The notes beneath the pieces are model-generated. The model was not told the origin of the DNA. It did no database searches and saw only the letters and a program-made list of their open reading frames with translations. Made by a program: the position numbers and the translations under genes. Of a stretch of 64,000 nt of DNA, positions 5,207 through 58,359 are shown piece after piece. How positions within the stretch are numbered: the first letter of the stretch is position 1; the number at the start of each line of letters is the position of its first letter. This DNA is from Octopus sinensis (lineage: Eukaryota), in assembly GCF_006345805.1 (NCBI RefSeq), contig NC_043012.1, positions 10,726,001 through 10,790,000 of the forward strand. Direction: 5' to 3'.

Positions 5207-5804
5207 CTGAAAAAAACATACACAAGAGAAATTTTAGTATGGAATGGTGAAACACACACACACAAATATACACTCTCTCACACATATACACACTTGTATT
5301 GGAACATAAAAGACAATGAATGAATCAATAATGGTAAAAGTTGTCAAATACATCAAAACATATAATAAATCACCCACAAGTCTGAGACAAACAAAAACAT
5401 CAGCTGCTGAGGGAGGCTCTGTATACTTGCCCTCAGTCTGCTAAAAACAGCAGCCAAATCTCAGATTATGTGTTCCTAGATACACTGAGAGAAGAGTGGA
5501 AATGGGCATGGCTACAATGTCTTTGATGAGGCTGTTTAACCCTAGGTTGTACCTTTGGGTCAAACTCAAAGATGCTCCAGCCTCTTTGTCATGAATGACT
5601 TCATAATGTATCCTTTTAGGTTAAAATTTCATAGAGATTTGCCTGTTATTTCTAGGAGTAGATGGAGCAAACATGTAGAACCTTCTCACTGGAATATCCT
5701 TGATAGAAGGTCAACAGGATTGGAGCTGGCCTGGGGTAAAATTACGAACTAGAAAATACAAGCATTACAAGAATTTTTGATTCTGTTCAAATCATGATCA
5801 TCAC

Positions 5805-6245
5805 CACTTAACATCCGTTTTTCATGCTGGCAGGAACTGGTAAAGCCAGGAATTATACCAGGTTCTATAGTCTGTTATGGCATGGTTTCTACAGATCAAT
5901 GCCTTTTCTAACACCATCCACTTTACAAAGTGAAATGGGTGCTTTTTGTGTGTCACCATCACCAGTGCTTTTTATGTGGTACCATCACCATGGAGATCAT
6001 CATCATCATCATCATCATCGTTTAAACGTCCGTTTTTCATGCTAGCATGGGTTGGACGGTTCAACCGGGGTCTGGGAAGCCTGAAGGCTGCACCAGGCTC
6101 CAGTCTGATCTGGCAGTGTTTCTACAGCGGGAAGCCCTTCCTAATGCTAACCACTCCGTGAGTGTAGTGGGTGCTTTTTACGTGCCAGGCAAGGCTGGCA
6201 ATGGCCATGATCGGTTGGTGCTTTTTACATGCCACCGACACAGGG
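5805..6245 (-). mobile_element. Two family C retroposon copies
   Basis: Two occurrences of the ttaa(a)c(a/g)tccgtttttcatgct start with catcat tails; similar to 1624-1820. Confidence 0.7.
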
Positions 6246-6643
6246 ATCACAACTACAATTTTGAGATTCATATTTAAATGAGGGCTCATGTTTACACCCA
6301 GAGTAATTTAAAATAACTCTACTGCTGCATATTTTCTCTGTTAACAAGGTTCAGTCTTGTGTCACTCACAACCTCCTTAATAACAAAAACTGACCACTTT
6401 ATATTCTTTCATTTGTTAAGTTTTTTAAAATCTCCATTCAGGTCCAAGTTGTTACTGCTGTCCCAAAATGACCAATCAGAATGAGCTGTGTTTGAAAAGT
6501 GGTTTGGTACTTTTTGGCTCTAGGGTCAATCACAAATCATTTAATCATTACAATCACGAAGAACACTGCCACCATATGGGTGGATAAAATACAGCAATAG
6601 ACACAGAACACAGCTCTGTAGCACGCCTGCATCCTACTACTAG

Positions 6644-6864
6644 CTCTTTAGCATTCAGTTTACTTTGTCAAAACTGATGCTCATTCATTCACGTTTTAAA
6701 AATTTAACCATGTATTATCTTGTAGCTTCAAAATGTTGAGGATGTGATTGTTTATTTTTTGATTAACATTGTAGGGTAGGTGTGAGAGGCCAGGTGAGGC
6801 TGGCTTCAACATAAAACAAGAATATTTTGGCTGGATATAATTGGTTTAAATACTAAAGGGTTAA
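6644..6864. mobile_element. piggyBac-like MITE (degenerate)
   Basis: Ends ctttagcattcag ... tttaaatactaaagggTTAA show imperfect TIRs and a TTAA at the right end. Confidence 0.45.
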
Positions 6865-7857
6865 GAAGCAGATTAACAACTATCTGTTAATTGAAACAAA
6901 CTCAGTTTGCCAAGAGAGTAAAGAAGGTCTGAGATTTGTTTCAATGACACTATTCAACCCTGATTGCTTTTTTTTTAATATATTTTAATTTTTTTGCAAA
7001 AAATAATTCTTAGTTATTGAACATAACACAATGTACAATAAGGAAACATGATGGGGTGGAGAAGGAAGGAAAAGAAAGAACAGAGGAGGATGAGAAAAGG
7101 GGAGAGAAGATGAGAAGTGGGAAAGAATGAAAGGGAAGAAGAAATGAAAAAGGAGGAAAGAGAAAGAGAGGGAGTAGAAAGTTGCTATTATTTAGCTTAA
7201 GGTCATCTTTGACTGAAATGACCTATCATTGCAGAGACGTTCCAAACATGACTATATCACCTTTTTGAGTGAAATCTAGGAATACATTGTGTGTGTTCAG
7301 ACAATGGAGGTGTAAGTTGAAGGAAATTTGGCTGCTCTTTCTAACAATATGAAATTCTACCAAAAGGCCATAAGGAATAAAATGGTAGAAGACCTGGGGG
7401 GGGGGAGTCAAATGTCAAAAGGAGCAGGGGGGGGGGAATAAGATGAAAAAAAATGAAATGAAAAAGAAAGAAACAAACAAATAAAGGATGGCAGTAAAGG
7501 ACAATGGGGGTGGAATGGGAGAAAACTAGAGGGGAATTGCCAGAAATAAGGTTTGAAGAGAGTGACAGCAGGGGACAGATATAGAGGTGAGAGGAGAGAG
7601 CAGTAAAAAAAGAGGGAGAAGAAAAAGGTATGATAATCAATTAAATTAATCAGAATAGAAACGGAAGCAGCAGTGCCCCCCCCCCACCACCACCACTGCT
7701 ACCGTTCATGAAAAGTAACGGGGAGGGGAAGTGAGATTGTGTTTGGTCAACGAATGACAAACAATGGTGGACAGGTAAGGGCGGTAATCGTAAAGGGAGG
7801 TAATTATGGCCAACAACAACACCATCACCATCGTCAAACAGTCGAGGCACAAACAAG

Positions 7858-8050
7858 AGCCTCCGTGTGGTTGTCTGACTTACTAGAAATGGCAGCTTAA
7901 TCTCCTTACAAATCTAAGCAAAGGGTAAGCTGGACAACGTGGTTCTGGGTTAGTTGTAGGACAAAAAGGCAGGATGGTCACAGCTGTCTTTGATCATAGC
8001 TCTGTTTGACTCGGGTTGACCTGGGGCAAAATAACATCAACAACAACATC
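7858..8050 (+). mobile_element. Short interspersed repeat family E with (AAC)n tail
   Basis: Motifs ctagaaat(a/g)gcagc and ggatggtca(c/t)(a/g)gct...ctttgatcat recur at ~5425-5570, ~9130-9370 (internally duplicated), ~46690-46860 and ~61115-61280. Confidence 0.6.
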
Positions 8051-8167
8051 ATTCTTCAATCTCTCCCTACCATCATCTAGCATTTGGTCATTTTCTCCTC
8101 TCCCTCATTACAACACCTAATCACTCCACCCGACACTCCAAGTGGATCACACACACCTTTTACATTT

Positions 8168-55802: not shown

Positions 55803-56019
55803 AGAATCGTTAGCACGCTGGGCGAAATGCTTATCGGTATTTCGTCTGCCGCTACGTTGTGAGTTCAAATTCCGCCGAGGTCGACTTTGCCTTTCATCCT
55901 TTCGGGGTCGATAAATTAAGCACCAGTTACACACTGGGGTCGATGTAATCGACTTAATACCTATGTCTGTCCTTGTTTGTCCCCTCTATGTTTAGCCTCT
56001 TGTGGGTAATAAAGAAATA
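55803..56019 (+). mobile_element. Long-tail SINE A with 9-bp TSD, adjacent to family B fragments
   Basis: ggtattggc at 55794-55802 and 56020-56028. Confidence 0.85.
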
Positions 56020-56321
56020 GGTATTGGCGTATCTAAGTCCTTCTAAATTAGCGGTTCGGCAACAAAAACCGATAGAATAAGTACCAGACTTTAGAAAAAC
56101 AAGTACAGGGGGTTGATTCGGTCAACTAAAAGCTCATCAAAGTGGTGCACCAGCATGGCCGCAGTCTAACGACAGAAAAAAGATAAAAGATACATATTGT
56201 TGAATATGTCCATTTTCAAGACAGTATAAAGTGATAAGTGGGAGGTTGGCTGCTATTTCTTCTAACAGGTCCAGCTACTCATTGGGATTCTTTTAATTAA
56301 GCTCATCTTAAAAATGTAAGG

Positions 56322-56635
56322 CAATAACAGCCTCTCAACCGTTTTAGATCACAGTTCTAGAATAAACCCGGGCTCCGTGCGCCGTCGCCAGCCGCTCTTA
56401 AACCTGTAAATATTTAACCAGCCGCCCTCATCCGAGCGAAACTCAGTTTGCTCCCGTACAAAATAACATCGAAGTGATTTCTCGTACAAAAATATAAGTC
56501 AATAACAGCCTCTCAGCCATTTTAGATCACAGTTCTGAAATAAACCTGAGCTCTGTGCGCCGTCGCCAGCCGCCCTCATCCAAGCAAAAATCAGTTTGCT
56601 CCCGTACAAAATTACATCGAAGTGATTTCTCGTAC
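56322..56635. repeat. Tandem duplication, period 178 bp
   Basis: caataacagcctctca...gatttctcgtac at 56322-56487 and 56500-56635. The second copy lacks a ~30-bp internal segment. Confidence 0.9.
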
Positions 56636-57240
56636 GTAAAATCCAAAGCTGTGGAGAGAGATTGGTCTGGTGCCACGAAACGAAAACAATTCAAAAGAGG
56701 AATTTCATGACATGTCAGACTTCCTTCACAGATTCCACTGACGCAACAACAGCAGCAGCAGCGCACACATCGGGTTTCAGAATCACATAAATCAAGAAAC
56801 TTATATCAACATGAACTCAATGAATTGTGGGTACATTCTCAGCTGAGAGTGAGAGAGAGAGAGGGTGTGGAGAGCAACAGAGAGCAAGAGATTCTATAGA
56901 ACAAGGGGTTAGTTCCTGTTTCCCCTTCCCCCACAAACCTCACATTTTAAAACTTGAAAAAATTTCTGTGACAGCTCCAAGTACCTTGGAACCTCATCCT
57001 CCACCTACTTAGACGGTATTTAACAATTAGGCCCAGTACATCTCATTTAAATATGCAGCACACACACACACGCAGTGGATATGTGTGGGTGGGTGTTTTT
57101 AAATAACGCTGCAAATTTTTTTTTTTTATTCTCATCTTTTTATTATTGTTGTTGTTGTTGTGTTGCTTGTATAAAATACTGACACAGTGGAAATAACAAA
57201 GGGAAGAATGCGAAGCAGAAGAATGGATGGAGGGTTTACA

Positions 57241-57620
57241 CTTTTACTTGTTTCAGTCATTTGACTGTGGCCATGCTGGAGCACCGCCTTTTAGTCGAGC
57301 AAATCGACCCCAGGACTTATTCTTTGTAAGCCTAGTACTTATTCTATCGGTGACTTTTGCCGAACCGCTAAGTTACGGGGAGGTTGTCAAGCGATGTTGG
57401 GGGGACAAACACAGACACACAAACATATACACACACGTACATATATATATATATACACACATACATACATACGACGGGCTTCTTTCAGTTTCCGTCTACC
57501 AAATCCACTCACAAGGCTTTGGTTGGCCCGAGACTATAGTAGAAGACACTTACCCAAGGTGCCACGCAGTGGGACTGAACCCAGAACCATGTGGTTGGTA
57601 AGCAAGCTACTTACCACACA
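57241..57620 (-). mobile_element. SINE family B, near-consensus full length
   Basis: Complete head, spacer and 3' half. Confidence 0.9.
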
Positions 57621-58359
57621 GCCACTCTTACGCCAAATGATGATGCAAAGTAAAAGAAATGAATGAATGGCGAGAATGAACGATAAATGAAAGGTGGGTT
57701 GAAGGACAGTAAATAGATGAAGGAATGACAGTATAAGGACGTGAAGGAAGAACAATAAAGACGAAGGAGAGAGAGAGAGTAAAAATGTGAAGGAACAATA
57801 GCAAAGAGATGAAAGAATGACTGTAAAAGCCGGCGTGAAGAAAGGATAGTTATAAGGGAGAGAACAATGAAATTGTGAAAGAAAAAGAATAAGGGCAGAT
57901 AGGAAGGAGGATAATGAGAGGAAGAGTAGGAGGAATGATAAATATAAAGTGAAATGATGGAGAGAGAGAGAGAGAGAGAGAGAGAGAAAGAGAGAGAGAG
58001 ATCAGTTGGGTGACATGGTAACAACGTTAAATTATTTGAAGAAAAAGAAAATTCCGAAAAGTCATTCCCTTAAAAACGCACGAAATCCAAAGCCAACTCC
58101 TTGAGTTCATCCCCAGCAGAATACCCGGGGCCCAACCTGCAGCAGCAGAACCTTCCAAGCAAGCATTGGCCTGATTGGTCACACCGGATGACTGTGATGT
58201 ATCTTTTTCCACGTGATGTCCTAAACATTATTACCATAAACAACAGACGTATAAGCTGTCCCAACATCCCTACACAAAAACGTTCTGTATATATATAGAC
58301 ACGTTCTACATACATGTACAGACAATTTGAAAAACCATGAAGAAACATTGATGACTGAC

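Follow-up and report, generated by a model that had tools for sequence, protein, structure and literature searches.

The last 119 codons of SCAPER are spread over 53.4 kb in the octopus DNA analysed here, and this raises the question of whether its two long introns hold an ancient regulatory landscape of Islet or were lengthened mostly by repeats. Linkage of Islet and Scaper extends from sponge to human; nearly all animals surveyed keep the pair, and C. elegans and Nematostella alone have lost it (Irimia et al. 2012, PMC3514665). The same report showed that an enhancer in a scaper intron drives isl2a-like expression and that human SCAPER has 16 introns longer than 10 kb. Islet enhancers, predicted or validated, lie near the 3' end of Scaper/ssp3, and such enhancers have been tested or predicted in zebrafish, mouse, human, fly and sponge (Wong et al. 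preprint, bioRxiv 10.1101/633651). The fish and sponge elements were assayed with the zebrafish ZED reporter vector. By 4C, Isl promoters were found to contact the Scaper locus in zebrafish, mouse and amphioxus (Touceda-Suarez et al. 2020, PMC7530604). For coleoids, data sets on 3D genome structure have been described (bioRxiv 10.1101/2025.08.29.672809). The first-pass annotation of this DNA had described the pair and its Scaper 3' enhancers in the same way, accurately according to these three sources.

The adjacency literature covers no cephalopod. We found no paper linking SCAPER with octopus or cephalopods, and neither SCAPER nor ISL is listed in the supplementary files of the cephalopod microsynteny paper or of the 49-genome one. 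The coleoid lineage has undergone extensive genome rearrangement, and the cephalopod microsynteny survey counted blocks of at least three genes, so that a two-gene pair would go unscored (PMC9023564). In this study, we analysed the SCAPER gene end within a 64-kb window, by which we mean the whole stretch of DNA.

Structure and homology of the SCAPER gene end

The first-pass annotation had assigned SCAPER to the minus strand, its 3' end pointing left, and had split its last 119 codons by introns of 41,947 and 11,145 bp. Splice sites, reading frame and homology bear out this placement, and both sizes are exact. The interval 5207-58359 consists of the two introns and exon B. The features, in the order of transcription, are as follows.

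58360-58551, minus strand: exon A, the antepenultimate SCAPER coding exon (192 nt, 64 codons, NIVQSGQ...LLANFIE)
16413-58359, minus strand: intron A-B (41,947 bp, GT...AG), with SINE-like families, microsatellite arrays and a retroelement-like relic inside
16352-16412, minus strand: exon B, the penultimate SCAPER coding exon (61 nt, EKQLECQQARLMPSKVSKTQ and the first base of the next codon)
5207-16351, minus strand: last intron, B-C (11,145 bp, boundaries GTAACT...TTTTTTTCAG)
5100-5206, minus strand: exon C, the last SCAPER coding exon, (D)KDKARTSDLEVRMSFASRFPVDVWPAAMACFKQE, with the TAA stop at 5100-5102
1-5099, minus strand: region 3' of the SCAPER stop, presumed 3' UTR and then intergenic DNA

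Exon A lies between the acceptor ...TTTTATTTTCAG/AAC and the donor GAG/GTCAGT, and both of its ends are in phase 0. Exon B has the acceptor TTTTTGCAG/GAG and the donor CAAG/GTAACT, and exon C, which follows the acceptor TTTTTTTCAG/AT, supplies the rest of the split codon and 34 codons. Each splice site is canonical, and the three exons join in one frame of 119 codons to the stop. A poly(A)-signal scan placed the first AATAAA after the stop at position 4870, 230 nt on, and repeat copies occupy 1925-2564 in the same 3' region. The exon preceding exon A was not found by tblastn within 58552-64000, and the upstream exons, which in a full-length SCAPER would encode the N-terminal SCAPER domain, the zinc finger and the cyclin-binding motif, are located beyond the window.

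The identity of the gene was examined with protein searches. The three-exon peptide matched SCAPER-named NCBI proteins in phmmer with E values from 7.5e-33 to 1e-20, the best being an Octopus bimaculoides protein (E 7.5e-33), and the SCAPER matches were short fragments only, with no full-length octopus SCAPER among them. By tblastn, 34 proteins were placed on exon A; there, the O. bimaculoides model P0001 has a single mismatch in 64 amino acids. A Nucella protein spans all three exons with 70% identity over 79% coverage. When the Nucella peptide corresponding to exon B was searched alone against the whole window, its best match was 16353-16409 (E 0.001, 63% identity). The best window match of the Biomphalaria last-exon peptide was 5112-5201 (E 1e-5), and the C-termini of two further SCAPER proteins (P0008 and P0029) matched best at 5106-5216 (E 0.03-0.09). 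These C-terminal peptide searches returned no second copy of exons B or C anywhere in the window. The conserved C-terminal region of SCAPER is present (...LQQLCSLPFQYFSDPRL...ILEQELSC.LL.NFIE... and a terminal R(F/L)P..W..F), and the exon C motif R(F/L)P..W....F is common to other SCAPER C-termini. These results indicate that the window carries an ordinary SCAPER gene end, correctly annotated. The octopod orthologue, which comes from a species closely related to O. bimaculoides but distinct from it, is transcribed from right to left, with the two long introns removed by ordinary GT-AG splicing.

Repeat content and length of the introns

We compared the window with itself. At least 31.5% of 5207-58359 matches other parts of the same 64 kb, a share that is a lower bound as it counts similarity inside the window alone. 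Several interspersed SINE-like families of about 350-400 bp have 8-17 matches each within the window, and 36 rows of tandem repeats include arrays of 640 bp and 290 bp. Stretches of at least 1 kb that have no similarity elsewhere in the window make up about 22% of the introns. The window contains no CpG island, no tRNA (ARAGORN) and no Rfam family at gathering score, the sub-threshold Rfam matches all lying on microsatellites. Pfam domains were absent from 10 long ORFs and from a three-frame scan of 50.4-54.0 kb. The other 83 ORFs of the window look like low-complexity junk. An island at about 52.9-53.8 kb looks like the decayed, old relic of a retroelement ORF. No stretch is marked as regulatory by anything within the window itself.

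Repeats are reported to make up 68.7% of the O. vulgaris genome, in which the median intron measures 2,467 bp and the median gene 20.3 kb (PMC10700109). Compared with O. vulgaris introns generally, both SCAPER introns fall in the upper tail, at 17 and 4.5 times the median. As in the repeat-driven intron expansion described for octopus (PMC10700109), SINE-like elements and microsatellites are scattered through them.

We also compared the same gene end in other lophotrochozoans. Biomphalaria (L007), Littorina (L003) and a relative, L002, have the same exon content, phase-0 intron site and R(F/L)P..W..F tail as the octopus window. The phase-0 intron follows ...NFIE, with the GT donor directly after NFIE in both the window and Biomphalaria; in Littorina, Lamellibrachia and others the sequence reads through as 'NFIEV...', and in many ORF-type matches this GT was translated as V. 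At the nucleotide level, the related loci L001 and L002 have exon A alone in common with the window (70-76% identity). In Biomphalaria the last 119 codons fit into about 1.1 kb and in L002 into about 3.6 kb, against 53.4 kb here. The Littorina gene end is intermediate to long, at least 10 kb; it has an 18.3-kb intron 5' of exon A, and the 10 kb downstream did not reveal exon B or exon C. Since the span is compact in Biomphalaria and L002, the long introns are not common to all relatives.

Errors of assembly could also inflate intron lengths, through a mis-join or through collapsed or duplicated repeats, and repeat-rich regions such as this one are where assemblies fail. However, N runs are absent across the 64 kb, and each exon is present once, in the correct order, strand and phase. 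The O. bimaculoides model moreover has the 53.5-kb stretch within this intron too, which favours co-linearity of the two species over at least the first 4.8 kb. We consider such an error highly improbable. The same model points to one further feature.

53475-53591, minus strand: candidate last exon of alternative or cryptic type, or an artefact of gene prediction; terminal coding exon in the O. bimaculoides model P0001

If this stretch were an alternative terminal exon, part of the large intron would serve SCAPER itself, yielding a truncated protein that lacks the conserved RFP..W..F tail. In the O. bimaculoides model, exon A is followed directly by the orthologous stretch, residues 127-165 of P0001 match 53475-53591 with 84.6% identity (tblastn), and a good acceptor (CACCCTCTGCAG, CCCTCTGCAG) keeps phase 0 with exon A. 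However, the frame that ends in ...AVQR in O. bimaculoides continues in the window as ...AVQKDKSSYP... for 24 more codons. The stretch is also antisense to a longer ORF resembling a retroelement tail, and an amino-acid identity of 85% is within reach of neutrally evolving introns in closely related species. A role as an alternative exon is therefore unlikely.

The Islet-Scaper pair and the cause of intron length

Islet was searched for in the window and in relatives. Neither human ISL1 nor O. vulgaris ISL revealed an Islet exon by tblastn anywhere in the window, the 5.1 kb past the SCAPER stop included (best E about 1), and a protein query with human ISL1 returned vertebrate matches only. In O. 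vulgaris, the Islet gene spans 153.5 kb with no annotated gene within 10 kb on either side; hence, if Islet adjoins SCAPER, the gap is probably longer than 10 kb. The partner gene was likewise absent from the 10-kb flanks of Islet in Patella and scallop and of SCAPER in Littorina, Biomphalaria and L002. A weak partner-gene match in the Patella Islet flank was rejected as chance. The Littorina Islet protein and SCAPER fragment are both on a record of 111,777,080 bp.

The first-pass annotation had read the long introns as a probable ancient Islet-Scaper block in an octopod, with Islet to the left on the plus strand and the non-repeat intron islands as its enhancers. On this reading, some of the unique islands would loop to the Islet promoter, and SCAPER would be the bystander. 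We regard this as possible but doubtful. The linkage in nearly all surveyed animals (PMC3514665), the predicted or assayed enhancers close to the 3' end of Scaper in five animals (10.1101/633651) and the 4C contacts in three (PMC7530604) favour it, as does the Littorina record with the Islet protein and the SCAPER fragment. The bystander is the same as in known blocks, namely the SCAPER orthologue with very long 3' introns, and its leftward-facing 3' end suits a convergent Islet on the left. A 153.5-kb O. vulgaris Islet is typical of a large regulatory landscape. Long bystander introns were indeed found (41,947 and 11,145 bp, 17 and 4.5 times the 2,467-bp median), but this feature is unspecific, since repeats lengthen introns too. 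On the other side, known Islet-Scaper blocks have an Islet partner, conserved non-coding elements, enhancer marks and promoter contacts, whereas this locus is known from the SCAPER gene end alone. The window has no Islet exon, O. vulgaris Islet has no annotated gene within 10 kb, the partner is missing from all five sets of 10-kb flanks, and the support for adjacency comes entirely from literature on animals other than cephalopods. Extensive coleoid rearrangement (PMC9023564) also speaks against a surviving block, and the tiny Biomphalaria 3' introns show that conservation of the block does not extend to long 3' introns. The islands that would be candidate enhancers under a retained block are as follows.

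6188-8165 (about 6.2-8.2 kb): unique island
8746-10341 (about 8.7-10.3 kb): unique island
13276-16517 (about 13.3-16.5 kb): unique island
31437-32462 (about 31.4-32.5 kb): unique island
41607-42921 (about 41.6-42.9 kb): unique island
46126-47586 (about 46.1-47.6 kb): unique island

Intron length is weak evidence of function here, because at least 31.5% of the interval is repeats, the O. vulgaris genome is 68.7% repetitive and the Biomphalaria end is compact. Repeat accumulation, and not packed regulatory elements, is the best explanation for most of the length. The introns of this octopod SCAPER 3' end were likely lengthened mostly by lineage-specific expansion of the repeat type. Octopus genes in general are inflated by such expansion, and here it would consist of numerous microsatellite arrays, SINE-like elements some 350-400 bp long and the decayed remains of transposons. 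Several points stand against repeats as the main cause. The octopus genome is about three times the size of that of Biomphalaria, and the roughly 50-fold increase over the Biomphalaria gene end far exceeds this ratio, so that factors other than average genome bloat may be retaining or tolerating DNA at this place. The Littorina gene end is also long-introned, about 22% of the introns lies in stretches of at least 1 kb unique within the window, and the Islet-Scaper block model predicts exactly such long bystander introns. A tentative and less likely reading is that the block survived coleoid reshuffling and that in octopods the 3' introns of SCAPER grew 15- to 50-fold relative to those of gastropod relatives, within a greatly expanded Islet regulatory landscape; the unique islands would then be candidate Islet enhancers.

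The window as it stands contains a well-behaved gene end with repeat-laden introns, and only that. If Islet adjoins and contacts these introns, an ancient bystander block would have outlasted one of the most thorough reorganisations of an animal genome known, and the 53 kb would be a concrete interval for Islet enhancers in a large-brained invertebrate. If the pair is broken, octopus would be the third natural loss after C. elegans and Nematostella, and would be useful for learning how Islet regulation is rebuilt.

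Three terminal SCAPER exons and their identity

We found that the last 119 SCAPER codons lie on the minus strand in three exons, separated by introns of 41,947 and 11,145 bp, in exact agreement with the numbers of the first-pass annotation.

58360-58551, minus strand: exon A, 192 nt; acceptor TTTTATTTTCAG, donor GTCAGT
16413-58359, minus strand: intron between exons A and B, 41,947 bp
16352-16412, minus strand: exon B, 61 nt; acceptor TTTTTGCAG, donor GTAACT
5207-16351, minus strand: intron between exons B and C, 11,145 bp
5100-5206, minus strand: exon C; acceptor TTTTTTTCAG, TAA at 5100-5102

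The joined frame reads NIVQSGQ...ANFIE / EKQLECQQARLMPSKVSKTQ / DKDKARTSD...RFPVDVWPAAMACFKQE*, and the window contains no Ns. Since the preceding exon was not found in 58552-64000, exon A is itself preceded by another intron, which is longer than 5.4 kb.

In a protein search, the 119-aa peptide matched 34 proteins (E 7.5e-33 to 6e-10), none of them a full-length octopus SCAPER. The top match was Octopus bimaculoides A0A0L8H6G3, which differed from the window at 1 of 64 exon-A residues, as expected for an octopod that is closely related to O. bimaculoides but apparently distinct from it. A Nucella protein aligned through all three exons, covering 79% of the query at 70% identity. Four unrelated SCAPER proteins also supplied C-terminal pieces, which were searched singly against the whole window. 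All four pieces matched best at one of the last two exons, B or C, and none matched elsewhere.

Best matches of the C-terminal pieces in the window
16353-16409: Nucella, E 0.001
5112-5201: Biomphalaria, E 1e-5
5106-5216: P0008 and P0029, two SCAPER-family proteins, E 0.03-0.09

The peptide search, the three-exon alignment and these independent matches confirm that the gene is SCAPER. In Biomphalaria, an intron follows ...NFIE at the same position and phase as in the window. From the protein sequences, such an intron can be inferred in many further SCAPER matches, in which GT appears to be read through as V.

No CpG island was found in the window (overall CpG observed/expected, 0.72). On the plus strand, A exceeded T in 29 of 32 two-kb bins, with an AT skew of up to 0.19, and the SCAPER sense strand is therefore T-rich. 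The skew weakened or changed sign at 12-18 kb and 42-44 kb and was low at 1-2 kb; transcription-associated asymmetry may be its cause. On the minus strand at 2656-2685, ~2.4 kb past the SCAPER stop, AATAAA occurs four times with exact 8-bp spacing. These motifs form a short tandem repeat rich in A and not a cluster of poly(A) signals.

Repeats and unique stretches in the introns

When the window was compared with itself, 30% of it and 31.5% of 5207-58359 matched other parts of the 64 kb, values that are lower bounds on repeat content. Interspersed SINE-like elements of ~350-400 bp formed at least three families, each having 8-17 matches in the window. One family starts with GGCGGCGAGCTGGCAGAAACGTTAGCACGCC... 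and carries the tRNA-like box GTTCAAATTCCGCCGAGGTCGAC; no tRNA was called by ARAGORN. TRF reported 36 tandem-repeat rows in the window.

Examples of repeats in the window
12908-13268, 23953-24307, 47593-47995, 55799-56191: SINE-like family 1
8168-8544, 57241-57627: SINE-like family 2
24807-25173, 26773-27149: SINE-like family 3
49002-49646, 59524-59816, 22190-22263, 11654-11812: long TG/TA/ATAC microsatellite arrays

The microsatellite arrays produced long Cys/Tyr/Val-rich pseudo-ORFs. No Rfam match in the window reached the gathering score; 57 sub-threshold matches (mir-297, mir-466, mir-3149 and others), none near that score, all came from TG/TA microsatellites. No Pfam domain was detected in ten long ORFs or in a three-frame scan of 50.4-54.0 kb.

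Stretches of at least 1 kb without similarity elsewhere in the window made up 22% of the introns (11.7 kb in total). One stretch without another copy, 52684-53736, overlaps frame-shifted plus-strand ORF pieces (~52880-53816) reading ...RRWLVGQPNFSSVNLY...VEKLKARKAR..., ...LNLQRQW... and ...ALGEGRYKWRHDKILAEIA.... These pieces may derive from a non-LTR retroelement, as they look like the C-terminal region of such ORFs in invertebrates. If this tentative assignment is right, "unique" islands, which the first-pass annotation had read as Islet enhancers, can be old transposon relics. Antisense to these pieces, 53475-53591 (minus strand) is the orthologue of the last coding exon in the A0A0L8H6G3 model, which joins exon A to this stretch (33/39 aa identical, 84.6%). 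It has a good acceptor in the window, in phase with exon A. The O. bimaculoides frame ends in ...AVQR and a stop, whereas the window reads ...AVQKDKSSYP... and continues 24 codons further. The stretch may serve as a terminal exon, whether cryptic or alternative, or may reflect an error of gene prediction.

Intron length in relatives

Octopus vulgaris has a median intron of 2,467 bp and a median gene of 20.3 kb in a genome that is 68.7% repetitive (PMC10700109). The two window introns are 17 and 4.5 times this median intron and lie in the upper tail of intron lengths, such tails being heavy. Relatives are more informative on this point. The counterpart of the 119 codons spans ~1.1 kb in Biomphalaria (locus L007 of GCA_030265305.1, 10348-11470), with ~0.85 kb from exon A to the last exon (...RMTFAMRFPIELWDSAQTYF...), and ~3.6 kb in contig L002, a related locus with the SCAPER 3' end. 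No exon-B equivalent was located in the Biomphalaria interval, where it may be absent or too diverged for detection. Littorina has an 18.3-kb intron before exon A, and its exons B and C were not found within 10 kb downstream. The compact Biomphalaria and L002 ends indicate that long 3' introns are not common to all mollusc relatives. At the SCAPER end, the octopod expansion goes far beyond what genome size by itself predicts. Both a heavy gain of repeats at this locus and an enlargement of the regulatory landscape are compatible with it, and the data do not separate them.

In L002 (ENA ERZ26168041), 1472-2518 contains the exon preceding exon A, followed by ~9 tandem copies of a 111-bp unit. 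Each copy re-encodes ~35 residues of that exon (aa 25-59 of the SCAPER-family protein P0007) at 66-71% identity. The contig has a coverage of 3.35x, and the copies are either a tandem repeat that arose from exon sequence or an artefact of assembly.

Islet as a neighbour

The Islet-Scaper background cited in the first-pass annotation agrees with its sources (PMC3514665, 10.1101/633651, PMC7530604). Among the animals surveyed, only C. elegans and Nematostella have lost the link; 16 introns of human SCAPER exceed 10 kb, and a scaper-intron enhancer drove isl2a-like expression in zebrafish (PMC3514665). In sponge, an enhancer lies near the Scaper/ssp3 3' end, as do its predicted counterparts in human, mouse and fly (10.1101/633651), and contacts between Isl promoters and the Scaper locus occur in zebrafish, mouse and amphioxus (PMC7530604). 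No paper joining SCAPER with octopus or cephalopods was found in the literature searched. In a cephalopod microsynteny study, a block needed at least three genes to be scored (PMC9023564), and neither the supplements of this study nor those of a 49-genome study contained SCAPER or ISL entries.

In tblastn searches with human ISL1 and O. vulgaris ISL-1-like (P0331, 408 aa), no Islet coding exon was found in the window (best E ~1), and thus none is present in the 5.1 kb that follow the SCAPER stop. The O. vulgaris Islet gene (GCA_951406725.2) covers 153.5 kb on a 78.3-Mb chromosome and encodes a 408-aa protein; no other gene is annotated inside this range or within 10 kb of either side. Islet covers 73 kb or 26 kb in two Patella assemblies and 27 kb in scallop. 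The partner gene was not visible within 10-kb flanks of Patella or scallop Islet, the Littorina SCAPER 3' fragment, the Biomphalaria SCAPER 3' end or contig L002. Mollusc Islet-SCAPER adjacency therefore rests on the literature, and octopod adjacency on nothing yet. Littorina Islet and the SCAPER fragment share a record of 111,777,080 bp, a hint of pairing and the sole positive sign among the lophotrochozoans checked.

The most economical reading, which we consider probable, is that of an ordinary SCAPER 3' end whose repeat-laden introns expanded specifically in this lineage. A regulatory block, with Islet converging from the left and its enhancers in these introns, could reasonably be extrapolated from other animals, in which the system is well documented, and long bystander introns, a feature of such blocks, are present in the window. 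By our analysis, there is an even chance that octopod SCAPER still has Islet as its convergent neighbour, and it seems rather unlikely that these two introns would harbor at least one Islet enhancer. If the block reading is true, the octopod would add another case of the already known Islet-Scaper system.
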